DNA of 64,000 nt, taken from assembly GCA_002269645.1 (NCBI GenBank), contig NIVC01001520.1:210884-274883 (forward strand), written 5' to 3'. The stretch comes from Macrostomum lignano (Eukaryota). Both the position numbers and the translations under genes were made by a program. The notes below the pieces were generated by a model. It searched no databases, was not told the DNA's origin, and was given only the letters and a program-made list of their open reading frames with translations. Below are positions 5,494 to 46,487 of this stretch, piece by piece. Numbering within the stretch: the first letter of the stretch is position 1; each line of letters starts with the position of its first letter.

Positions 5494-6195
5494 TCATTTG
5501 AAATTCGGTGGCCGTCTGCTATAGTACACAGCGCAGCTGGGACTCTTCATAGCCAGCTTATTGCTTCCGTCGGTCAGTTGGCAGCAGGCCAAAAACGGAC
5601 GGACATCCACCGACCAGTGGCCGAAGATGTCCGCTCGTCGATCCGATGTTCCGGCGCCAACCGTCGGGTCCGTCAGCAGCTGACCATGATCGTCGTAGCA
5701 GCACTGCTGCCTGGCCGACGTTCCGTCAGGCAGCTCCAGCGGCCAGCTGCGCACGCAGAAGTCCGCCCCGATGTGGAAGCCGCAGTCTGGGCCGCCGCAC
5801 AGCCAGGACTTCAGCCAGCTGGGTGCTGCTAGCCATGAGCCTGCATTCGTCGAACTAGACGCGGCGCCACGGCAGCAAAAGTCGCTCCGCCAGGTTCCAT
5901 CGTTAACAGCAGCAGTAGCAGCGGCCGCATCGCTCGGACAAGGATAGCGGATGCGCAGCCGGTGTAGCCAGTCTGGCACAGTTTCCGAGGCGGCTTCGGC
6001 GCGGGCCCACTCGGAGCAACGATCAGTGGCGACGTCTGACTTGGGTGGAACTTTGTTGCAGTCGCTGTCGTCGCGGCTAGTACAGAAATCCTGCTGCTGC
6101 TGCTGCTTCTGCTCCTTGTGGAGGCTGCTAACAGAGGCTACAGACGTGGCTACCATGATGCAGCAAATCAGAATAGCGAGATAGTGCTTTGCCAT
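5494..6195 (-). CDS. Secreted AMOP-domain protein (isthmin C-terminal-like), 233 aa, single exon
   Basis: Hydrophobic N-terminal signal peptide. Motifs FCVRS, QQCCYDDHGQLLT, GAG, HWSVDVRPFLACC and YYSRRPPN match the remembered AMOP consensus (HCCYD..RLLT.GKGAG...H.K.D..PW..C...PPNN). Confidence 0.85.
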   Translation of the reverse strand: MAKHYLAILICCIMVATSVASVSSLHKEQKQQQQQDFCTSRDDSDCNKVPPKSDVATDRCSEWARAEAASETVPDWLHRLRIRYPCPSDAAAATAAVNDGTWRSDFCCRGAASSSTNAGSWLAAPSWLKSWLCGGPDCGFHIGADFCVRSWPLELPDGTSARQQCCYDDHGQLLTDPTVGAGTSDRRADIFGHWSVDVRPFLACCQLTDGSNKLAMKSPSCAVYYSRRPPNFK

Positions 6196-9700: not shown

Positions 9701-10890
9701 ATCGTTTTTGCTATGTTTAGTAACATGTGCCTTTAAGTTTTAGAAGGCCGAATTTTGAAGGGTAGAAAATATACTTCCGGATTCCGGAAAGTTTGTTGCA
9801 TAAATAATATACACGCGTGTATTCTGAGACTGTCTGTCAAGTAGATACAGTATATAATTAGTTGTTGAAATTTTAACATTATATACATGTACGTAGATGC
9901 GAGTGCAATGTAAAATACGACAATGCTTACTTTTTTAGCGTCTCAAAGGCCAGTCGTATGTTATAAATCCACTGTCAAATCAATATTTTGATAGTTTGAA
10001 GTGCTTTCTTCTTACAGCTTTGGCCTTGAATAGTGTTTTGTTTTACAGAACAAGCTACGACTACGAGTGTATACTTTTTTCTATGCACCAAAACTGTACT
10101 CTACATGTCGAAGGCTTACCAATAGACTATCTTGTACGCAGTAGCTGGCCCAGTGCTCTACAAAGCACAAGTATAGAGTTGGTCTGTACATTGGCATCTG
10201 CTTGCACACTGTCATAGTGCGATTTTGATAAAAAATGCATTTTGCATGTTACCTGCAAGCTTTCAGGTTGAACGGTAACTTATCTCTGCTGCTTTGTGGC
10301 TCGCTAAGTTTAGTTAACGTTTAGCTGATCAAAATAGCAGGGCCAGTCTTGACGCAGTTCCCATATCCATTTTTATGCTTTTAAATCTCTCAAAAAGACG
10401 TCACGCACGCAGTCTTGAAATAGAATTCAATTATGCCATTCGAAATTGACGTTCGGGATTAAATTAGTCTCCAGGCATCTCCTATTTTTAATGCAGTTTA
10501 AACCTCAGTCGAGGCTGAGATAAACAAGGGGCTAAAATTGAAATGTTTGATTTCCAAAGATTACTGAGTCTGTCTAGCAGCAGACTGCTAAACTTGTGGC
10601 CTCATCTGGCATGAGTTTAATAGAATGAAAAAATTCAAATCTGTTGAATAATCTGATTTAATCAACTTTATCCAGTCAGAACCGGGAGGCAGAGGCGGCG
10701 GATTTGTGTTTATATTCGGCTGGCGTCCGACTACCGCAAGAGATTCTTCGCGCCGCATTCGGAAACCTGTAGGAAAAAGCATCTCAGCCACCCTTGAAGA
10801 CAGAAGGTGAGTCCTACTGTAGCTTCTGCCGCACTGCTTTCTGCATGAAGCCCATTCACACAGTGAAACTCGTCCCTCCCACAGTGAGAC

Positions 10891-11859
10891 ATGACTGCCC
10901 AGCTGGTTCGTCTAACTTGGCTGATTGCAGTGGCGACCATTGCCGCCTGTGCCATTCTCTGCAGGGAAGCATCGGGGACAACAATGCCGGCAGCGTCGCC
11001 AAACTTGCATGACTGGGAGGAGCAGGCAGGCGTTGATACGGAGCTCGACTTTAATAAGCGCGGCTTTATCAACAAGCGCAGCTTTATCAACAAGCGCGGC
11101 TTCATCAACAAGCGCGGCTTCATCAACAAGCGCGGCTTTATTAACAAGCGCGGCTTTATCAACAAGCGCGGCTTCATCAACAAGCGCGGCTTCATCAACA
11201 AGCGCGGCTTCATCAACAAGCGCGGCTTTATTAACAAGCGCGGCTTTATCAACAAGCGCGGCTTCATCAACAAGCGCGGCTTTATCAACAAGCGCGGCTT
11301 TATCAACAAGCGCGGCTTCATCAACAAGCGCGGCTTCATCAACAAGCGCGGCTTCATCAACAAGCGCGGCTTCATCAACAAGCGCGGCTTTATTAACAAG
11401 CGCGGCTTTATTAACAAGCGCGGCTTCATCAACAAGCGCGGCTTCATCAACAAGCGCGGCTTTATTAACAAGCGCGGCTTTATCAACAAGCGCGGCTTCA
11501 TCAACAAGCGCGGCTTTATTAACAAGCGCGGCTTTATCAACAAGCGCGGCTTCATCAACAAGCGCGGCTTCATCAACAAGCGCGGCTTTATCAACAAGCG
11601 CGGCTTCATCAACAAGCGCGGCTTTATTAACAAGCGCGGCTTTATCAACAAGCGCGGCTTCATCAACAAGCGCGGCTTCATCAACAAGCGCGGCTTCATC
11701 AACAAGCGCGGCTTTATCAACAAGCGCGACTACTTTAAAAAGCGAGGATTTTTTGATAAGCGGCAGGACGATCTGCTTTTCCCGATGAAGGTGCGAATGT
11801 GCGTCGCCTACGGCCTGTTCTGCGATCGCATCCACGTCTGGCCGTTCCAGCAGGGATAA
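10891..11859 (+). CDS. Neuropeptide precursor, achatin-like tetrapeptides (36x GFIN, SFIN, DYFK, GFFD), 322 aa
   Basis: Signal peptide, acidic spacer, then 37 hexapeptide units ending in KR (11062-11727), DYFKKR, GFFDKR and a two-Cys tail. The 18-nt units differ almost only at synonymous sites (ttt/ttc, atc/att). AATAAA at 12252 and 12263. Confidence 0.9.
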   Translation: MTAQLVRLTWLIAVATIAACAILCREASGTTMPAASPNLHDWEEQAGVDTELDFNKRGFINKRSFINKRGFINKRGFINKRGFINKRGFINKRGFINKRGFINKRGFINKRGFINKRGFINKRGFINKRGFINKRGFINKRGFINKRGFINKRGFINKRGFINKRGFINKRGFINKRGFINKRGFINKRGFINKRGFINKRGFINKRGFINKRGFINKRGFINKRGFINKRGFINKRGFINKRGFINKRGFINKRGFINKRGFINKRGFINKRGFINKRDYFKKRGFFDKRQDDLLFPMKVRMCVAYGLFCDRIHVWPFQQG

Positions 11860-12723
11860 ATAGGCAATCCTGCGTCTGTCCTAGAGATCGAATCCCCCAC
11901 TTCTATCGCTCTCCGAAAAATACAGCGACCTTTGTTAAACAAAAACTGTGAACTGAAGGCTGAAGCGTTACCGATGAAATTCTTTCAATTTGAGCTGCTG
12001 TTTGACGATATTAACAGTGAAAAAAGTTATTTATCTACCTAAATCCAGTGACTATTTTACTGACTATAGTTGATGAAGATAATAATTAAGCTGGTGCGAT
12101 CCTAGAATTCCTGGAATTTTCATGTCTACTGACCAGTTTAGTCGGGATGAAGCTGTAAAATCAAACTTGGCTTTCTATAACCAATTCAGAGCTATGAGTG
12201 TTGGCAACACCAGCGCTAGCTGTTGTCTGGGAAATTTGCTATGAAGTAATTAATAAAAGAAGAATAAAGTTAAATATACCTTTCTGATATCGGACACGTT
12301 ACAGTTTCGTCAATTTTATTGTTAAAAAAGTGCACTTTTTCTGCCAACATTTTGTTTATTTGAAAATAGGCGGCTTATTAAAAATATTCCCAAAGATTAT
12401 GACTCAAATTAGTGTCACAGGCATCAGTTTCTCATATTTCTATAGCTAGCAGGGGCGGATAATTATTTGTTTAACTTTTGCAAACGATTTTCAATCCGAA
12501 GTTTGCGAATTTCTGAAAAACAGGGTTTGAGTCATTTTTAAAAAAAGTTTTCCTTACAACCTGGCTATTAGAGTTCGGTTTAGGTAGATATTGCGCTTTG
12601 CAACTGAAACTGGGACTTCAGGCTGCTTTTATAATAATTATGGTTTCGATCGTCTGAAAATTTGTTAATCTCCCAAATTCTCCCAAATAAATTCTCCCAA
12701 GAAATCTGAACAAGTCTTTAATT

Positions 12724-13149: not shown

Positions 13150-16100
13150 TCAGGCGGCAGAGTCGATGGCCTCACGCAGCTGGCGAGGAGAGCCCGGATC
13201 CACTGCCTCGGCACCAAGCCGGTCCGCGCTCGCTTCTTCCGCTTCTGCCCTGGCTTCGGCCTCGGCCGCCAGCCTGGCTAAGTACTGAGGCGTCTCGTTG
13301 CGCTCAGTCTCAAGCAGATCGCCGACCTGGGATTACGGGTGACTAATCTGTGTAATCACAGAGAATTTTTTTTTAAATGAACTTGAATCGATCTGTCCTC
13401 ACCCTGTAGTCATGCGTTCGTCTGCCTCGAGTTTTCAGCTTTGTTGGCGTGGGCCTGTCTAGCTGATCAATGTATTCCAGCACGCTCAGGTTGTTCTGGT
13501 GAATTTAGGCATTGATAGAAATGCTTTTCAAGTAAATATTCCACAATTTTTCGAGGTTTGTGAAGCATATGCAGCCAACTAACACTGAATGTCGTTGAAG
13601 GAAAATTTTATGCGATTATTATTCCAATAGGATTTGGATAATAATAAAATCTGCCGCAGCTATTCAGCTATCCTGGGCTGTTCAGTCCAAGGCCTGGGGG
13701 GGGGGGGTTCAGTCCAAGGCCTGGGGGGGGGGGTTCAGTCCAAGGCTGGCACCCATTTTACAACTGAGTGGACTGAAGCAATGCAGAGTTAAGTGTCTTT
13801 CTTGCTCAAGGACACAAACTGTTCCGAGTTTGGTCGAGAATCTAACCCCCGACCTTCAATTCGTGAGTCCGACGCTCTGACCACCAGGCTACAAGCCCCT
13901 AACTGGATAGCACACCTTCTATGATGGATCTAAATTACTATATTTTGAATCTAAAATTATTTCCCATTCTACTACTTACAGCATCTTTTGCTGACATGTC
14001 GACGCTGTTGGAAGTTGAGATCACAGATAGAGTGGCGCGCTGATCGCGGATGCAGACAGCGTAGTGCACAGGCGTCCTCAGCAGGTTGTCGCCTTTGTAG
14101 ATCATCTGAGGGAACTGCTCGCAGATGGCCGCCACCATGTCGTGGTTCTCCATTAGCACGGCCATGTGGAGAAGATTCCTGCCACGCCTGTCAACGCCGA
14201 GAGGCACGCGTTTCTCATTGGCGAACTTGACGAAGCCCTTGCGATCGTCGTTGATGACGGCCGTATGGATTAGCTCGATTTCCTCGTGGTACTTGGGCTC
14301 CTCATCCAGCAGCTCAAGCAGCTCTTTGTAGTACCGCAGCGTGGCCAACTCTTTTGCGGTCTTGTTTCGCGACGTGCCTCGAATGTCGTTGATGTGATTG
14401 TAGCCGTCGATGATCAGCTGCTCGATGGCGTCGATGTCGCCCACGTAGGACAGATTCAGGACGAAGTCATCGATGATCTGGCCGAGACGGGAGCCTCCAA
14501 CGACGCCTCCCTTGGTGCAGTAGTCGCGAGGCGTCCAACCGCGCATGTCCCGAGCGGCCACGTTGGCACCGCGGGAGAGCAGCTGCTCAACCACGCGGCA
14601 CTTCGCAGCCGGATTATCGTCCTTCATCACGGCCGCGTGCAGAATGGTCCGGCCAAGCTCGTCGCGCAGTCGGACGTCCACGTGAGCCGCGATCGCTTCA
14701 GTGACGTCGCTAGCGATGTCGTCTCTGAATGCCCAGAAGGCGACGGGTCCGCACGGCGCGCACTCCTCGTACTGGACGTCAAGCCGGGCGCCGAACTGCA
14801 GCAGGAAACTGGCAATCTTGGCAGAGCCGTACTCCATCACGCTAGCTATGAGCGGGCGGGGCACGAATTCGGCTCGCCAGTCGTCCGTGAAGCCAGCAAA
14901 GTAATAGCTGGAATAGTGACGACAGGGGCCTTTCAAAGAACTTTACACCACATGTTGTGTTCTTGAGTGTTACAAGAGTAAATCATGCTTTGAGAATTAT
15001 AAGCGCATAACTTATTGAGCTTATACCATTATATGAGTAGATGCGACCCCCTTGACTGCCATTGCAAGTAGTAGATGCAACCTACCGGTAGCAGGCGTTG
15101 ACCTTCTTTTCTCCCGCGCCCATAGCAATGTGGTGCTTCATTCGATCCAGGTCGCCGGCAATGGACGCGGCCGCGAATTCGCAGCCGTGCAGGCTGTCCT
15201 CCAGATGCTGCTGGATGGCTTCGTCGCCAATGTCGCGCGCCAGTTCGGCCAGGCTGCGCCCGTTCTTGGAGACGTTGACGCGGCACAGGCAGCCAAGCCA
15301 GTGGCGCACCCGCTCCAAGTCGCCGTCTTCAACTGCCACGTGCAGACCCGGCAGCAGGCGTCGGGTGTGTCGGCGCTGGCGTACCAGGTCGCCCCGGGTG
15401 GCGTAGGTGTTCTGCATGATCACGTGACCGCTGTTGGAGCGCACCGAAGCGTCCACGCCCAGGCAGATAAGATGGTCGAGTAGGATGCGGTCCGGCGGCT
15501 GACTGTAGGCTGCCAGAAGAACCGTCTCGCCTTTGTTGTTGCGAGCGTGAACATCGACACCTTCGAGAGCGGTCTTGTACATCAGGCGGATGAGTAGGCG
15601 CTTCAGCTGTAGCTCTTCCGTTGCCAGGTAGCTAGGAACAATTAGGGAATGGAGCAACAAGCATAGAACTTAGCTGGCTTGAATCGAAAATAGCTAGCTT
15701 GTAAAAATATGACTCACTGCTGCACCAAGAAGTACAAATAGGTGCCGCCAGTCTCAGGATCCGTGCAGTCAAGATCCACCCGGTGATTGTGCAACTGCTG
15801 CCAGGCGTCCTCCAGACTGTCGGCCGACATTTCTTCCACCAGGGCCACAAATTTGGCGGATCGAAAGGCATTCTTGCTGCTCTCCAGTTGCTCTGCGTCG
15901 GTATGAAGCACAAAGCAGATAAATTATATTTCTGATGAAGATACTTAACATCAACAGATTCCCTTTTATTTCTGTTGCCTTTGAACTTCAGAACTCACCG
16001 AAGTATTCTTCCTCGCCTATCGCACCGGCCGCTTTGAGCAGCTGATAGACTTTGTCAGCCTCGGCTATGCCAGACAGGGTCTTCACCTCGGCCAGCAGAG

Positions 16101-18696
16101 GCTTCGGCACCTTCTGCGACGTATCCTTAGTGCGCAGATTCGGCTTGTCTGGCGAAGCGGGACGGTTAAAATTTGTTCGAACTTTGCAGTGAGCTGCCAT
16201 CCCCTTAACAACCCGTAAATCCTGTAATATTTGTTTTCCTTTGGGAGCGCCTAGAGATTGTAGTGGCTGTTCCTCTTTGAGAACAACTAGACCTGCAGTG
16301 GCTGTTCCTCTTTGAGAACAGCTAGACCCTACCCTGCAGTGGCTGTTCCTCTTTGAGAACAACTAGACCCCACCCTGCAGTGGCTGTCCCTTTTTTCAGA
16401 ACTCTGGACTAAAGTACTGCTTGAACTCATGAGCTGTATAGCTAATTGAAATAGGGTATTTAAATCATAAACCTGAATGCAACGCCCTGTATCCAGGTTG
16501 CTACAACGAGCGCCCCATCTCACCGGACTTCAGAGCCAGCATCTGCTTCACCCGCTTGACGTCGCAGGCGAGCGCAGCGCAGACCAGCTCATTAGTGCTG
16601 GTGTACTTTTTCAACAGCTCAACAATCTCGTAGTTTCCCGTCTCGAAAGCCAAATCCATCAGGGTCTTGCGTCGTCGTCGACACTCGGTTCGAACCCAGG
16701 ACGTCAGGTAGCGAATCATTAACTCTTTGTCCTCTCGAGCAACTATTGATTGTTTATTTTACAAGCATGCGAGTGATAGATAGAAGCTGTAATTGATGTC
16801 CTAAGTAAAGTAAATTACTAGCTTGAAATGCACCTCTGTCCGATATGAAAGTACATGTTTCTACAGATAAAACTACCCGTATAATTTAGGTAGATAAGTT
16901 AAAACCGATTTTGAGACTAGAAGATCTTTTTGAGAGCATTCAAACAAAATTAAGTCAAATAAAGCTATATTTATAGCATTCAAAAATGCAGAACACAGGT
17001 TTTTTCTGTAATTAATGAGCCTGTAATCCTGAGCCTGAAAATGCGAGAATTCGATCACGTGACAGAAACCCGAAAGGAAAAACTGTGCGCGCTCGCGACC
17101 GTGAGTGGTGTGACTGCCAGATTCGAAAAGCTGCGTGCATGATTAGCATATATAATGAGCAACCTTCCTTTCAGTGGGGCATGCGGTTCGGCGACAGACA
17201 GTGTGTGAGCACAGAAACAAAAAGACAGAAATGAAAAAAACAAACAATACAATGAAATAGAGTCAAACAAACGTCAGTCGAAGAGTTCAATATAAATTTT
17301 CCCGTGATCAGTTTTGCAAATCAACAATAAATTACACCATTTTTACCTGCATACCAGATGCCGTCGCAGACTTGAATAAAAGTTTTTTAGGATTAATTTC
17401 AGTGTTTTGGACTTATAAAATACATGTTTAAATGTGCTGTTTGAATTTAAAGTCGTTATTCTGCTCCTGATCAATATTAAAATTTGATTTTTATAGGAAT
17501 TCACTTATTTATTGCGGAATAATGATGCGGCTCGATCAGCGTCTCTTCCGATGACATCACTCACCTGCGCTCCACAGGCTGCACTTTGCACCTTTCTGAC
17601 CTCGCACCAGCCAGGCCTTGTGCTGAGCGTTGTCGTGGATGACCCGCGAGTTCATCTCGTTCGTGATGCCCGGGTCGATGCCTGATTGGTTGGAGGTTTT
17701 TCGGATGCACTCTTTCAGCTTTTGACTTCGCGCGTATTTAATTGACTTTTGAAAACGTTACGAGTAGCTAACGGACTTGTACGGACTGCATTGATGCCGC
17801 GTAATGGATTCATACAGACTTAAACGTGTACTCAGATGAGTACCACCGATTCCAATATTTACTTTTATATATCCCACAGGCTCTACCAGACTTCACGAGT
17901 GTCTAACAGACTCTTAGACTTTGCCTATATCTAACAGACTCTTACAGACTTTACCTATATCTAACAGACTCTTACAGACTTTACCTATATCTAACAGACT
18001 CTTACAGATTTTACCTATATCTAACAGACTCTTACAGACTTTACCTATACCTAACAGACTCTTACAGACTTTACCTATATCTAACAGACTCTTACAGACT
18101 TTACCTATATCTAACAGACTCTTACAGATTTTACCTATATCTAACAGACTCTTACAGACTTTACCTATACCTAACAGACTCTTACAGACTTTACCTATAT
18201 ATAACAGACTCTTACAGACTTTACCTATATATAACAGACTCTTACAGACTTTACCTAAACCTGACATCCTTTTACAGACATGAAAACAGGCATATTAAGC
18301 AGTAAAGCAGTCAGAACCAATCGTTCAAAGAGATAGATAAGAAAACTGCAATAACTGGCGCGCACCCAGTCGGATCAGGTGTTGCACCAGCCGGTCGCCC
18401 AGCGGCCTGAAGCAGGCGGTGTGCAGCGCCGTGTTGCCCACTCGATTCTGCGCGTTCACGTCGCAGCCACGAAGTGCCAGCTTGTACAGCAGCGGCACCG
18501 CCGGCCGGACGTCGCCGCCGCACCTGCCGGCCAGAGCCTTTAGATTTAGCACCACCAAGTGCAGGTAGCTGTTCTGCTGATCGGTGGATCGACGCCGAAC
18601 CTCGGTGAGCTCGAGCTCGTCAAGCAGGCTGAGGGCTCGCGCGTAGTTCGCCCGGCTGGGATTGCAGATGAGGCGGTAGAGCTCTGTGTCCTCCAT
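13150..18696 (-). CDS. Multi-exon ankyrin-repeat protein with an internally duplicated module
   Basis: Hand-built exons 18696-18366, 17681-17565, 17370-17347, 16742-16524, 16193-15999, 15892-15718, 15631-15086, 14907-13980, 13495-13403 and 13326-13150. All junctions are GT-AG and phase-compatible. Ankyrin motifs DVNAQNRVGNTALH, DVHARNNKGETVL, DELGRTILHAAV, DRRGRNLLHMAV, DNLLRTPVHYA. The start may lie further upstream. Confidence 0.8.
13655..13898 (-). mobile_element. tRNA-derived SINE family A (CORE-like central domain), copy 1
   Basis: Reverse complement shows A box tggtcagagcg, B-box-like gggggttagattc and tgtgtccttgagcaag..acacttaac...gtaaaatggg. Homologous to the copies at 41883 and 60737. 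Confidence 0.85.
16280..16390. repeat. Short intronic tandem repeat (cctgcagtggctgttcctctttgagaacaactagac)
   Basis: About four degenerate copies in an ankyrin-gene intron. Confidence 0.8.
17904..18258. repeat. 30-nt minisatellite (ctaacagactcttacagactttacctatat)n, intronic
   Basis: Direct tandem array. It explains the 10-aa-repeat ORFs on both strands. Confidence 0.95.
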
Positions 18697-19248
18697 GGTA
18701 CACGACAGGCTCGAGAGCGTCTTGTCTGTGTCGTCTGTCTGCCCGTCTCTCCCTCTCTCTCTCGCCCTGTGTTTTGTGAGCCTTGGAAAGGTGTGGGGAG
18801 GCCCTTGGCAACCAAAATTGCTTAAAGATTTGCTCAAAAGAAGAGTACGAGATAGCGGGCTGGTGGTGGGGGTGGGCTGGACTGGCTTGTGCTCACGGCG
18901 ACTGGGAGAGAGGGTTGAGCTGGGAAGGAGGAGAAGGCTGAGGCACTCCTGATGTTGCACTGAAATTTCTTCCTTGCTTGTGCATCTCTGCTTTGTTAAA
19001 AAATGCTCATCTGCCCCCCTGCCTCCCCTGTCTCTCTGCCTGCTCTGCAGCTTGGCTTTTGAAAATGTGTAGAAATTTCACTATTGCTGCAGGGAGGGTG
19101 GCTGAGTACTGTGGGTAGTGGGGGAGGGGATAGATATAGGCGTCAATATCGTACAGGTGGGCCGGTGGAGTGCGGGGGGGGTCTGCTGCGAGTACCCGAC
19201 AACCACTGCTATGGTTTTTATCAGAAATGAAAGGAGGGAGAGAACTGC

Positions 19249-22487: not shown

Positions 22488-22554
22488 GCGGTGTGGCTGC
22501 GCACCCTATCCTGCTGGGGACCGGCAGCAAGGCAGAGAAAATCTCAAATGCAAC

Positions 22555-24175
<1,621 letters not shown>

Positions 24176-26911
24176 GCTTGACTTGTACTGGCGGTTGGCT
24201 AAAACAACCAACAGCCATGTACTTTTCGCAAAATCCAGTCAGACATTTTTCCCAACTCGCTGCCATTCCCAGAGGCTCAGAGGTCCATGGACAAAGCCAG
24301 AGTCACACGCGCATGTATTCAAGTACATAGCAGTCTAAAGAATTGCGTGAATTATGAAGAGTCGCCCAGAAAATTCTTTGTTCTTTTACTGCATTGATTG
24401 GGGCAGTGTCTGGCCATCACAGAGGGAACTGCTGCTTCCCTTAGACTGGCCCCCGCTGTGAACCCCCGCCTTTCAATACTTGTTGCAGTACAATGCTTTT
24501 TTGCTTTCCCCCTTAATTTGTTTCAAGCTCAGACAATTTTCACTATACCTGCTACCGACTGATTCCTGCAGGGCAAACTGACCTGCTTGACAAGAGTCAC
24601 AGACAAATGCGAATTACGGATGAAAAATCTTTTTTAAGATTAAAAATTTATAGTTTTTTGTGTTTGTTTCTTAAAATTTCCATGAACTTTGGGGGTCCAA
24701 CCCCCTGTAAATGAGTGTAAATGCATGACGAGGACTTTTACTAGTTAAATCTGCCTCGGGACGCTTTTATTCAACCCTTCACGTTTCCATTGGCAACAAA
24801 AGTTTCTGGATAAAATTCCTTCTCACACGCTGATCAAACAGTGCTTGCCGTGGAGAAGCCTATCTATCTGCTGGTACGTCGGCTGATCGAAGCCCAGTCA
24901 AGCAGGACAGCAATAAGACCCTGTCACAGCCCATGCAGTCTGAATCCGGTCGATTGTTTAATCAGTTTGAACCTATATGGAACAGTTGCAGTTGTAATTG
25001 CAATTGGCAAACGTGAGAGTCATTTCTAAGAAAATCGAGTCTAACGTCCTTCTATTTCAGCAGTAGAAAGACGCAATTTTTGCTTTCATATTCCATCTTT
25101 ATCGAGAATGGAAGTTTTAAATTTTTGGCACTAAATTAACAATTTCTTACCTGATTGTGGACTTAAAATTTGCAAGTATTTCGATAAAAGCTAAATTTGC
25201 AAGTTGACCAATTTAAATTTTGAAAATGCATCGATTGAAGATTGGAAACTGTGAGTGATTTTTTCCTGTGTTTATATGCTTCTCATCACGGATTTTTCGT
25301 CACTTTTTACATCAGTTATGCGATTTGATTGCTCACTTGATGGCAGTGTGAACAAGTCCTCAGTGTTGTTATCTAATGAATGCTGTAATTATGCGGGAAT
25401 TACTGAGAGGTCAAGGCTCATGGGGGTTTTCTGAAATGCTGTGACTCATGTGGGTTAAAAGCTACATGTAGTTTATTCAAAAATTTTTACTCCTCTGTTT
25501 GTTGCCTCCCCAGCGGGGGGCAGATTGCTAGTCCACTATACTAAAATGGTTTGTCCGTATCCAGGTAGGTAGGTGGCTATGTAATTGATTTCAGAAAAAC
25601 GGTTCAACGGATTTTAATGAAACTTACTCCTCTCGATCAGAAAATTTCCTGCGAAATGCATTTTTAGCAAGATGGCAAGTTTTTTGCTTTTTTAAAGCAC
25701 AGAATTTCCAATATCTCACCTTCTGGACTAGTGAATTCCAGATGGAGCAAGCGTGTGGTTTTTTCAATATTGATGCATATGGTTGTCAAGATATTATTGT
25801 CTTTGTTTGTCAAGAAGGCGCTTGCCAGACAATCGTTATCACGCACTGGAACCGCTGATTATTTATCCATAGTTCAAAATTTCTATGGTAATTTACGTTA
25901 AGGCAATGACATTCAAGCAATGACCAGTCATTGTTTGAAATTAAAAATAAAGCAATTTACCGGGATATCATTCTAGAAAACGAACCAGTCTATGAGCTTA
26001 AAATAAAATAGTCTATGGTTGTAAGTAGGAGGCTTCGCCCCCACACCCCCATTCCCCCTTCCCACTCCTGATGGGGAGGGGGAATTTGATCCTGATGAAC
26101 AAATTGACCAATGAAGTTAGCTGTAAGTGAGAAAACATGGTAATGGCCAACCCCCTATTGCGTTCTAAGTTCTTTAGCGTAATTTTTCTAGACGCTGTTT
26201 TGTCTATGGTGAAACATGGCTCTGTATTTAAACTGTACATAGAGAACTTGGATCATCCATCTCGGTCAAAAGACATGATTGCTTTATTTGAAATACCGAA
26301 GTCGCTGCAATCTAATTATGACAAGCAGGCGGGGCTTTTTTCTTCTTCAGCAGCCCCCGAGAGGAAAATGGCATCTTGCTAGTTATAAGCAGCTTTGAGC
26401 CGGGCAGGACAAGGGCAGAATGGCAATTTCTCTCTTCTCTCTCCTCTCTCTAGTCCAGAGGAAACAATGGCTTAGAATAAAATTCAGCCCCATGCAGTCC
26501 AGTTGCCGGGCTGCGAGGAGGGGAGGATGGCGCCACGACTAGGTGCGGAAAAGCTCTCTGAAGAGCGGATAGGAGCGGGAAACGGGAGCCACTAGAAGAA
26601 TATTGGGGGGGGGGGGGACGCACTGACACGCTGCCCATGTGCCGGCCGTCTCCGTTGTCTCCCAGGCGATTCCAGGCTCCTCTCTATGCTATATAGGAGG
26701 CACATTTGCCAAGTAGTTGAAGGCTATGAAAATCCAACTCACCCTTTGCTCCTCACGAATTTGAGTCCGCGCTGATTGGTCAGGGTGATAAGTGGAGCAG
26801 ATCGTATAGCCCACCCGTTTTTGTCCCAAGCCCTAGCTATATCTCCAGGGCAATTGGGGATTCGGACTGGAAGGTCATCCAGGTCAGAGTGAGCTACCGG
26901 ATATTCTGCAG

Positions 26912-29233
26912 AGCTGCTTTGCCATACGAACTTCAAACTGGCTGAGCCGCCTGCTCAGCAGCAGCCGCAGCGGCCGCCAACATGCGAGGAGCTCCTAGAA
27001 GCCGTGGGCCGTCGCCGCGCCTACCAGGCCGGCTTTCTCTGCCTGATGGCGCTGGCGGCGGCCCTGCCGGCTATGCAGACCCTGTCAGTCAACTTCACTT
27101 TACTGCGCAGGCCGTTCGTGTGCGCGTCAGCGGCTGCTGATGACCCGGATATCCGGAATAGCTCCGGTGCAGCAATGGCTTACAACTTCACTGCTGGAGT
27201 CATGGACGCCTGCACAGCAAACTGGACTAGCACAAGTTGCCAACGGTTGGTCTTTAGCGATCGTCAGATGACAGAAACGGCGCTAGAAACATTTCAGCTC
27301 GTGTGCGACCGAGACTACCTAGCAACGGTTGTCAAGGTGATGTTTATGCTCGGCTTTCTGGCCGGCAGCACCTGCTACGGCCTGCTGTCGGACCGGTGCG
27401 GCCGCCGGGGCGCCTTCGCCGCGGCCTGCGCGAACCTCGCCGTCGCAGGCTCGGTGGGCGCAGTCTCCAAGGACGTCATCACCTACGCCGCCCTCCGCTG
27501 CCTGGCCGGCTTCGCCTCGGCCGGCCTGCTCAGCGTCAGCTACACCTGGCACGCCGAGACTCTGCACAATGGCGACCGGTTTCTGCTCAGCCTGCTGATG
27601 AAGAATGGCTGGAGTCTGGGCCTTCTCGCCCTGGCCGGGGCGGCCATGTGGACTCGCGACTGGCGAACCACGGAGCTTCTGGCGTCGGCACCTGCGCTGC
27701 TGCTGCTGCCCCCGCGTGGCTGTTCGCCGCCGAGTCGCCGCGCTGGCTGCTGATGCGCGGTCGGGCAGCAGCCGCCGAGGCGGCACTGCGCCGGATCGCC
27801 CGCGTCAACCGGTCGGCCGGCCGGCTGCAGCGCCTGTTGGAACAGCGCCCGGTACAGCGGCAAGAGGAGCAACAGGTGGAACAGTCCGAGCAGCCGCTCG
27901 CAGCCAGGTTGGGGAGCGGGGTCTGAAGCGTTAAATAAGTTTTATTATTGCTCCCCATAAGTTTCTTATCTACTCTACTGTACTGTGCACTACTCTATTC
28001 TACTCTAACCTAATCTACTCTACGCTACTCTACTCAAATTTTTCTTTAGACGAATCTACTCTACTCTACTCTACTATTATACTCTACTCTACTCAAGTTT
28101 ACCTTTCTCGTCTCTTTTCTGGTCTTTCAGCCTCGTCCATTCTATCCACTCCTCAAGAGTCAAATCAATTCATAATTGCGTCTTATTGTATAATGATAGG
28201 CTCTTTTTATGACAACAAAAGTTATTGCAATCTGGCTTTTCCAATTTTCAGAAGCCTGACAGCCCCAGACGAACCGAATCAGCCTGCAGAACAGAGCGAA
28301 CAGACTGCGCCGGAGCAAAAGTCTCCAGCTAACGCCACGGCGGCGCTGCCGCTGCTCAGCCTGCTGCGCCGACCGCCGCTGCGCCAGCTGGCCCTGACGG
28401 TCTGGTGCACCTTCGCCGTGGTCAGCGCCGGCTACTACGGCCTGGCGCTCGGCTGGTCCGACCTGCTCGTCCAGCGCAGTGGTGGCGGAGGCGAAACCGG
28501 CGCTTTCGCTGGTGCGGCGATGGCCGCCGGAGCCGAGGTGGTCGCCCGTCTGACCGGCATGGCAGCGGGCGGCTGCTGCGGCCGGGTATCACTGCTTCTG
28601 GCCGCCAACGGAGTCGGCGCTGTGGCGCTGCTTGCGCTAGCGGCCGGCGCGCCCGGGTTCGCCGGTCGGCTGGCCGCGGCGCTGTTCGGCCGGTTCGGCC
28701 TCCTGCTGGCCTTTGAGGCGGCCTGGCTGCACGCCAGCGAAGCTTTCCCGACGCCGGCCAGGAACTCCTGCGTCGGCGTCGCTTCGACCTCCGCCAGAGT
28801 CGGCGGCGTAGTCGCCGCTCAGCTGGGCCTCCTGGCCGGAGTCTGGCGGCCGCTGCCGCCGCTGCTGTGTGGCCTCCTGGCCACGGCCGGCTGCTGCCTG
28901 GCGCTGTTCCTGCCGGAGACGCGGCAGAGCCGGCCGCCGGACAGCCTGGAGGAGGCCGAGCAGCTGTGCGCAGGCAGCCGAATTGTCGATCGACTTTACG
29001 CCGCCGGAGCAGCCGGCGCTGACGCTTGTCGTCGGCTTTGTCGAAGTCGAAGTCAGCCGCGTCAACCGGCTGGCGAGGCAGTCGTCAAGGAGGGTGTGGC
29101 GGCGGATGCGACAGCGCAGTTGACGGGCGGCGCCGGTTCCAAGGCTGCGGGCACGGGCGCCGGCTTCAAGGTCCCGAAGCTTCGCCTGAACTCCGGCTCA
29201 GATCTTGGCGGCGCTGGCGGAACAGCTAACGGC

Positions 29234-34504: not shown

Positions 34505-46487
<11,983 letters not shown>

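Follow-up and report, generated by a model that had tools for sequence, protein, structure and literature searches.

A probable achatin-type neuropeptide precursor with a 37-unit xFIN array in the flatworm Macrostomum lignano

Achatin signalling, which is among the roughly 30 peptide systems that go back to the bilaterian ancestor, offers the best-conserved example of a D-amino acid within an animal neuropeptide. Several spiralian phyla (brachiopods and phoronids) have lost the system. Achatins are free-acid tetrapeptides, usually G-F-x-D/N, with a D-residue at position 2, encoded by multi-copy precursors in which each peptide is flanked by Lys-Arg (KR), and they have a dedicated receptor clade (PMC5818035). 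This D-residue has been described as evolutionarily conserved in the achatins of protostomes as well as deuterostomes (Bauknecht and Jekely 2015, reviewed in PMC5818035). GFGN, which has been suggested to be the ancestral form, is the achatin of Xenoturbella, nemertodermatids, Saccoglossus, Branchiostoma, and priapulids (PMC6188537). Other forms include GFGD, GFGE, GYGE, GFVD, and GISD in nemerteans (PMC8557429 supplement), GFGD and GFWD in the oyster (PMC4200219), and GdFFD and GdYFD in Aplysia (PMC11277431). Platyhelminths were outside the sampling of the spiralian survey. Here, a stretch of 64,000 nucleotides from Macrostomum lignano (contig NIVC01001520.1, positions 210,884–274,883 of the forward strand; hereafter the window) was analyzed. 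An open reading frame (ORF) at window positions 10891–11859 is very probably a real coding gene, and it probably encodes the achatin-type neuropeptide precursor of this flatworm.

The ORF (969 nt, plus strand) is complete and occupies one exon, encoding 322 amino acids followed by a stop codon. An in-frame TGA (10885–10887) lies two codons before the start codon, so the ATG at 10891 is the earliest possible start and the coding sequence (CDS) is complete in a single exon. The precursor consists, in order, of MTAQLVRLTWLIAVATIAACAILCREASG, TTMPAASPNLHDWEEQAGVDTELDFN, a KR site, 37 xFIN-KR units, DYFK-KR, GFFD-KR, and QDDLLFPMKVRMCVAYGLFCDRIHVWPFQQG. Cutting the product at KR yields 36 copies of GFIN and one each of SFIN, DYFK, and GFFD, i.e., 39 consecutive KR-delimited tetrapeptides, in addition to an N-terminal piece of 55 residues and a C-terminal piece of 31 residues. 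The layout proposed in the initial annotation, a signal peptide, an acidic spacer, and these same KR-delimited peptides in these same numbers, is correct to the residue.

The predicted signal peptide, MTAQLVRLTWLIAVATIAACAILCREASG (approximately residues 1–29; 10891–10977), has Arg7 in its n-region and a hydrophobic core at residues 8–24, where the Kyte-Doolittle means over 11 residues reach 2.6. It ends with A-S-G at residues 27–29, that is, at positions −3 to −1. Cleavage near residue 29, a heuristic assignment, fits this profile and agrees with the extent annotated before. The acidic spacer TTMPAASPNLHDWEEQAGVDTELDFN (residues 30–55; 10978–11055) contains six Asp/Glu and no Lys or Arg. It is followed by the first KR site and 37 tandem 18-bp units (11056–11727), of which the second encodes SFIN and the other 36 GFIN. 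Tandem Repeats Finder describes this array as 37.4 copies of period 18 at 11056–11728, with 95% matches, no indels, and a score of 1164. The DYFK-KR unit (11728–11745) is unchanged in all three genomic copies of the gene described below. The peptide DYFK had been listed as a product; the unit is indeed present, but DYF is followed by the tribasic sequence KKR, so carboxypeptidase trimming probably leaves DYF rather than DYFK. The GFFD-KR unit (11746–11763) comes next, and the CDS closes with the 31-residue peptide QDDLLFPMKVRMCVAYGLFCDRIHVWPFQQG (11764–11856), which begins with Gln, contains a Cys-x7-Cys pair, ends with Gly, and is invariant in the three copies. One might speculate that this peptide is a second product with a pyroglutamate, a disulfide bond, and an amidated C-terminus.

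The 36 GFIN copies and the single GFFD fit the achatin consensus G-[F/Y]-x-[D/N/E], whereas DYFK does not. SFIN, as well as GLIN from a homeologous copy of the gene, is a one-step variant of this consensus. GFIN has three of its four residues in common with GFGN and differs at position 3 alone, the most variable site of the achatin family (G, A, F, W, V, and S). The peptide had been regarded as derived; GFIN is less derived than claimed, as it keeps the C-terminal Asn of the probably ancestral GFGN. The occurrence of GFGN-type variants in xenacoelomorphs, mentioned in the initial annotation, is documented for Xenoturbella and nemertodermatids (PMC6188537). GFFD, the unit by which the gene had been linked to achatins, is identical to the Aplysia peptide. 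In the translation, none of the units has a Gly before KR, as had been noted; without this amide donor, the tetrapeptides would be free acids. Indeed, the same direct KR-tetrapeptide-KR arrangement without Gly, named earlier as the achatin layout, is present in the retrieved precursors of Xenoturbella, Nemertoderma, and nemerteans.

Genome searches covered the 764 Mb M. lignano assembly (764,410,778 bp in 5,269 sequences). The pattern KR-GFx[D/N]-KR has 67 matches, far more than chance would give: the three copies of the gene account for 66, and the remaining one is a fortuitous match outside ORFs; a reversed control gave 0. The genome thus contains no separate canonical achatin gene, and no other achatin-like precursor was found in the assembly with either the motif pattern or a nemertean achatin query. 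This query, from Cephalothrix, ranks the three copies of the gene 2nd to 8th in the genome, with purine-rich satellites scoring similarly.

An achatin-type G protein-coupled receptor (GPCR) had been predicted for this animal, and two paralogous genes answer to it. Reference receptors were taken from the PMC8557429 supplement and comprise Platynereis AKQ62997, the achatin receptor deorphanized by Bauknecht and Jekely in 2015, together with other achatin-clade receptors and the VP/OT, GnRH/AKH, corazonin, CCAP/NPS, GPR150, GPR19, and tachykinin receptors. A search of the genome with the Platynereis receptor revealed two multi-exon genes clearly above the remaining matches in identity. Gene A (C3968:30904-32815) has further copies on C1072 and C2997; gene B (C3067:60302-64085) is also represented on C4912, C3672, and C1199. 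Both carry the motif GY[TS]xxWQRKxY, which is common to all reference achatin receptors. In a tree of 40 sequences and 371 columns (IQ-TREE, LG+C20+F+G4), genes A and B form a pair (100/100) that joins Capitella 215 and Lottia 216 as sister (100/99) within the achatin-receptor clade (97/98), which comprises seven reference receptors in addition to the two from M. lignano. The VP/OT, GnRH/CRZ, CCAP, GPR150, and GPR19 receptors each form a supported clade of their own, and the achatin clade excludes nine further M. lignano GPCR matches. The best match of gene A among 5.8 billion proteins is Lottia LOTGIDRAFT_94997, i.e., the reference sequence Achatin_94997_Lgig_216, and the relationship is a reciprocal best hit. 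As to their structure, the two genes share 61% identity, and both have an intron right after the DRF/DRY motif. Transmembrane segments 4–7 are encoded by a single exon in gene A, and gene B has an extra intron in the third intracellular loop.

Were the resemblance to achatins convergent, the ORF would encode a lineage-specific secreted multi-copy peptide with another receptor or with a non-neuronal role (gland, pheromone, or defence), and the achatin-type receptors would have another ligand or none. This alternative is considered rather unlikely, though several observations speak for it and thereby weigh against achatin identity. The tetrapeptide motif is very short, and multi-copy families are fast-evolving and recurrent, with 14 clade-specific ones in xenacoelomorphs; the MxGFG peptides of these animals share GFG with achatin, yet are not classed as achatins (PMC6188537). 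Ile3 is not documented among the achatins retrieved. No similarity outside the peptides was detected in word-indexed protein searches, and the top 150 phmmer matches among 1.84 billion representatives were solely generic period-6 repeat proteins. Such a poor whole-sequence signal is expected, because the conserved part of precursors of this kind amounts to four residues; homology to achatins rests on a four-residue motif and on the architecture. Furthermore, genes A and B belong to the Capitella-215/Lottia-216 subgroup, whereas the deorphanized Platynereis receptor groups with Lottia 217 in the other one; an achatin is therefore a presumptive ligand for A and B. Against convergence, two different peptides on one precursor, GFIN and GFFD, both match the achatin consensus, GFFD being the very peptide of Aplysia, and the non-amidated, direct KR-xxxx-KR arrangement is that of achatins. 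A ligand is implied by the fact that two achatin-clade receptor paralogs have been kept, both with several intact copies, and the assembly holds no second gene with KR-GFx[D/N]-KR. Membership in the achatin family is thus the preferred interpretation of the precursor.

Three copies of the gene are present in the genome: one on C1520, which is the copy in the window (37 units), one on C1985 (18 units), and one on C4529 (11 units). The 36-fold amplification of GFIN reported in the initial annotation is therefore true of the window copy but not of the other two. The 3-kb flanks of the copies are 97–99% identical, with substitutions at 90 of 4,764 aligned positions (1.9%). By contrast, the non-repeat part of the CDS is the same in all three (0 differences in 303 nt versus about 5.7 expected from the flanks, P about 0.003), and only 2 of 84 flank windows of this size are free of differences. 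The three arrays have 66 units in total, and the unit types TTC-ATC, TTT-ATC, and TTT-ATT differ solely at synonymous third positions. The two common variants, TTC/TTT in 33 units and ATC/ATT in 11, are synonymous in the GFINKR frame alone among the five open frames. Amino acid changes are restricted to three singletons (SFIN twice and GLIN once). The invariant non-repeat CDS and the synonymous nature of the common variants indicate purifying selection on the encoded peptide, with the number of units free to change. The interspersion of the three synonymous unit types is not alike between the homeologs, from which it follows that each array is a separate entity shaped by unequal exchange and not an assembly artefact.

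These patterns also bear on whether the ORF is a gene at all. It could be an 18-bp minisatellite that is open as GFINKR by chance, with a fortuitous ATG upstream. The setting lends itself to such a coincidence and counts against a coding gene. M. lignano is a free-living, neopolyploid flatworm, the assembly of which includes 180 Mb of duplicated blocks, and simple and tandem repeats make up 15% of its genome (PMC5730564). Within the window alone, about 25 tandem arrays are present, and the majority of the long ORFs arise artefactually from these. Satellites of 18 bp are abundant in the genome; many are open in several frames and several read as KR-delimited tetrapeptides in one of them, so the repeat by itself is no proof of a gene. 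The GFIN array is itself open in five of six frames. As for transcript, peptide, or expression support, the three protein variants and the unique N-terminus were not found in public protein collections, a result of little weight given that gene models of M. lignano seem to be missing there altogether. The inspected satellites, however, have no start codon or signal peptide, vary without regard to codons, and have flanks and would-be CDS that evolve alike, and none of this applies to the GFIN array. In the latter, an in-frame ATG is followed by a signal-like segment, an acidic spacer, the diverged DYFK and GFFD units, a unique 31-residue tail, and a stop codon, and no inspected satellite is built in this way. 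Its common variants are synonymous in the coding frame alone and its non-synonymous ones are singletons, its non-repeat CDS is invariant against a flank divergence of 1.9%, and consensus splice sites as well as an in-frame stop lie immediately upstream of the ATG; the mimic satellites have none of these features. Taken together, the start, signal, and tail structure, the upstream splice signals, the three copies, the invariant CDS, and the synonymous common variants make it very likely that the ORF is a real protein-coding gene, and a chance minisatellite is accordingly quite improbable.

The satellites that imitate such a precursor are nonetheless instructive. The precursor has 138 matches in the genome; those inspected, with the exception of the two homeologs, are all period-6 satellites unrelated to it. 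A KR-DYWN array on C1585, considered as a second precursor, has no ATG or signal peptide and has stop codons upstream, and a single KR-GFLD-K match on C995 is surrounded by stop codons. Matches to a nemertean achatin with high identity, on C94, C2159, C939, C3135, C290, C1009, and C28, are purine-rich satellites with five or six open frames. Satellites resembling KR-tetrapeptides occur at C94:670800-672900, C2159:18400-20200, C939:407100-407700, and C1585:155500-158000, as well as on C3135, C290, C1009, and C28. They read as GEGD, GAGE/GVGE, GLNE, GVRD, or DYWN/DDWN, without a start codon or signal peptide, with five to six frames open and with no aromatic residue at position 2. Other minisatellites of 18-bp period, mutually unrelated and open in three to six frames (reading, for instance, FTNYRN, TSQTID, or MVCEVS), are strikingly abundant throughout the genome, with examples at C773:206000-216000 and C142:57000-60500 and on C1647, C257, C500, and C1100. 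Since many 18-bp satellites mimic KR-delimited peptide arrays, motif-based mining for neuropeptides in this genome needs extra checks, namely a signal peptide, synonymous variation, and comparison of homeologs. Pfam matches of the precursor to phage Pam3_gp59 and DUF5530 are artefacts of repeat composition. A bacterial origin, with the ORF as the precursor of a ribosomally synthesized and post-translationally modified peptide, was considered on account of a GCGATCGC motif in the ORF and rejected: only two such motifs occur in the 64 kb, genes are sparse in terms of coding density, and metazoan domains are found in the neighbours.

The features of the precursor suggest the following route to its products. 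The signal peptide (approximately residues 1–29) would direct the precursor into the secretory pathway, where prohormone convertases would cleave after every Lys-Arg and a carboxypeptidase would take off the basic residues. The genome encodes machinery of this kind, including several P-domain convertases and three copies of 7B2/secretogranin V, the chaperone of PC2. In each of the latter copies (C3187:56472-56897, C352:204648-205073, and C1233:118555-118977), the Pfam match contains a single in-frame TGA, most likely because the search reads through a short intron. Each precursor molecule would thereby give approximately 36 GFIN, one SFIN, one DYF(K), one GFFD, and the 31-residue C-terminal peptide, the tetrapeptides being free acids as in all achatins, as predicted from the missing Gly amide donor. 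By analogy with the achatins of molluscs, annelids, and hemichordates, Phe2 is probably converted to D-Phe by an isomerase. The peptides would then probably act on the receptors encoded by gene A, gene B, or both; the receptors are present, and their pairing with these peptides is presumed. At the level of the gene, unequal crossing-over changes the length of the array, which is 37, 18, or 11 units in the homeologs, with selection holding the peptide sequence constant.

The step that leads to D-Phe deserves separate consideration. An isomerase of the Aplysia central nervous system has been characterized as an enzyme activity, not as a gene, and isomerizes GxFD analogs that carry F, Y, W, or L at position 2 (PMC11277431). 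Position 2 of every peptide on the precursor and its homeologs is F, Y, or L, i.e., a residue accepted by this activity. Alternatively, the precursor might be of the achatin type without isomerization, such that all-L GFIN and GFFD are active or the receptor is indifferent to the form. D-isomerization has been shown in some taxa only, L and D forms coexist in Aplysia, and an isomerase in flatworms cannot be assumed since no isomerase gene is known (PMC11277431). Yet the conservation of the D-residue in achatins of protostomes and deuterostomes (PMC5818035) and the isomerase-compatible residues at position 2 make all-L peptides somewhat unlikely. It is tentatively proposed, as a possibility with considerable doubt attached, that G-dF-I-N and G-dF-F-D serve as a high-output neuromodulator through the two achatin-type receptors in M. 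lignano.

Upstream of the ATG, candidate transcription and splicing signals can be recognized on the plus strand. A TATA-like element, TTTATATTC (10708–10716), is the sole match of this kind in 10600–10891 and may be the core promoter; it lies approximately 100 nt upstream of a splice donor. This donor, AG|GTGAGT at 10807, is the sole GTRAGT within 10600–10900 in a pattern scan. The donor sets the 3′ end of a putative non-coding first exon in the 5′ untranslated region (10717–10806), the 5′ limit of which is provisional. A putative 78-nt intron of the 5′ untranslated region follows (10807–10884), extending from GTGAGT to the polypyrimidine sequence TCGTCCCTCCCACAG with a consensus donor and acceptor. 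The last 153 nt before the ATG do not differ at all among the three gene copies. Downstream, the first canonical AATAAA after the stop codon (12252–12257), located 393 nt past it in a pattern scan, is the putative polyadenylation signal. The acceptor that ends at 10884 could alternatively be used for trans-splicing of the spliced leader (SL), a process that affects approximately 30% of M. lignano genes (PMC8629364). The 35-nt SL followed by its GTAAG donor (PMC8629364) has 30 exact copies in the full assembly (0 in the control), in comparison to eight genes reported for the deduplicated genome. The SL RNA genes are clustered with a spacing of approximately 11–19 kb, on C1214, C3830, C1213, C4525, C4853, C1211, C1212, and C3672.

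The remainder of the window (46% GC) has a low coding density and contains metazoan exons. A large exon of a TRPC-type cation channel, with ankyrin repeats and a TRP_2 domain (E 1e-29), lies at 45036–46487 on the minus strand. An ankyrin-repeat ORF of 332 residues (13938–14936, minus strand; E 6e-13) is located on the other strand from the precursor, 2 kb downstream. A weaker second one (18325–18960, minus strand) follows, and both may be exons of one gene. An AMOP-domain exon (5494–6195, minus strand; E 2e-9) and an exon of an MFS/sugar transporter (27004–27753, plus strand; E 3e-8) complete the set. An ORF of 579 residues at 38592–40331 (minus strand) matches the Pfam domain Gp5_trimer_C of phage T4 (E 2e-33). 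A phage gene at this position was rejected as a repeat artefact, as the ORF lies wholly on a 24-bp satellite (49 copies, 38663–39843). The ORF of 586 residues at 22506–24266 consists of (TAGA)n and is likewise an artefact.

In the literature searched, the coverage of which was partial, no report of GFIN as a neuropeptide or of an achatin in flatworms was found, and an earlier description under another name is possible. The precursor is apparently the first addition to the known achatin family from Platyhelminthes. What is new is a variant of position 3 and a copy number above that of any retrieved precursor, and these fit, and do not challenge, existing ideas on achatin evolution. With both ligand gene and receptor genes in M. 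lignano, a gap in the phylogenetic distribution is filled, and the Asn-ending G-F-x-N form is seen to persist beside GFFD in a spiralian. M. lignano is a laboratory model with RNA interference and transgenesis, in which the function of achatin could be studied and the isomerase sought. Should D-Phe be present, achatin and D-amino acid peptide signalling would extend to Platyhelminthes, and approximately 37 substrate peptides per transcript, combined with these tools, would offer a practical system for finding a neuronal L-to-D peptide isomerase. The homeologs with 11, 18, and 37 units would then represent a natural dosage series.

Comparison with false achatins, which are glycine-rich or encoded by satellites, helps to delimit the gene. 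Lingula XP_013387045, which had passed for an achatin until corrected by Thiel et al. (2021), resembles the KR-GEGD, KR-GAGE, KR-GLNE, and KR-DYWN satellites of M. lignano in that it clusters with achatins by composition. In contrast to sequences of this type, the GFIN gene begins with a start codon and a signal peptide, has canonical cleavage sites at every unit, and shows an aromatic residue at position 2. Likewise, common variation that is solely synonymous and a conserved non-repeat CDS are found in the GFIN gene and not in the mimics.

The two receptors are nested inside the achatin-type receptors, the 'b-unchar-3' clade of Mirabeau and Joly, and share their GY[TS]xxWQRKxY motif, but differ from the reference members by a long stem branch of 1.03 substitutions per site.

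Among the ligands, the GFGN precursors of Xenoturbella bocki, Nemertoderma westbladi, and Meara stichopi, as well as those of Saccoglossus, Branchiostoma, Priapulus, and Halicryptus (PMC6188537, Thiel et al. 2018), have a signal peptide and KR-flanked free-acid G-F-x-N peptides, as does the precursor described here. Gly1, Phe2, and Asn4 are common to the two, whereas position 3 is Gly in the former and Ile in GFIN. An important difference is present in the array: GFGN precursors contain three to five copies, separated by spacers in Nemertoderma, and no GFFD, whereas those of M. lignano contain 11–37 strictly contiguous copies. The ALNP precursor of Aplysia californica (PMC11277431, PMC4721866) yields GdFFD, GdYFD, and SdYADSKDEESNAALSDFA, and its GFFD is the same tetrapeptide as that in M. 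lignano. Both precursors have a bulky hydrophobic residue at position 3 (Phe versus Ile), an aromatic residue at position 2, and an additional product that is not a tetrapeptide. The Aplysia peptides, however, end in Asp and their D-Phe was shown experimentally, whereas the main peptide of M. lignano ends in Asn and is known from its gene sequence.

The lophotrochozoan GFxD/E achatins, including achatin-I of Achatina (GdFAD), GFGD and GFWD of the oyster (PMC4200219), the nemertean set (PMC8557429 supplement), and GFGD of Platynereis, also form contiguous KR-xxxx-KR arrays, with at least 10 units in Cephalothrix. Their C-terminal residue is acidic and none has Ile3, in contrast to the Asn4 and Ile3 of GFIN. 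Since positions 2–4 vary among them, the GFIN variant is within the range of the family, and the 37 units of the window copy are the highest number among the achatin precursors retrieved.

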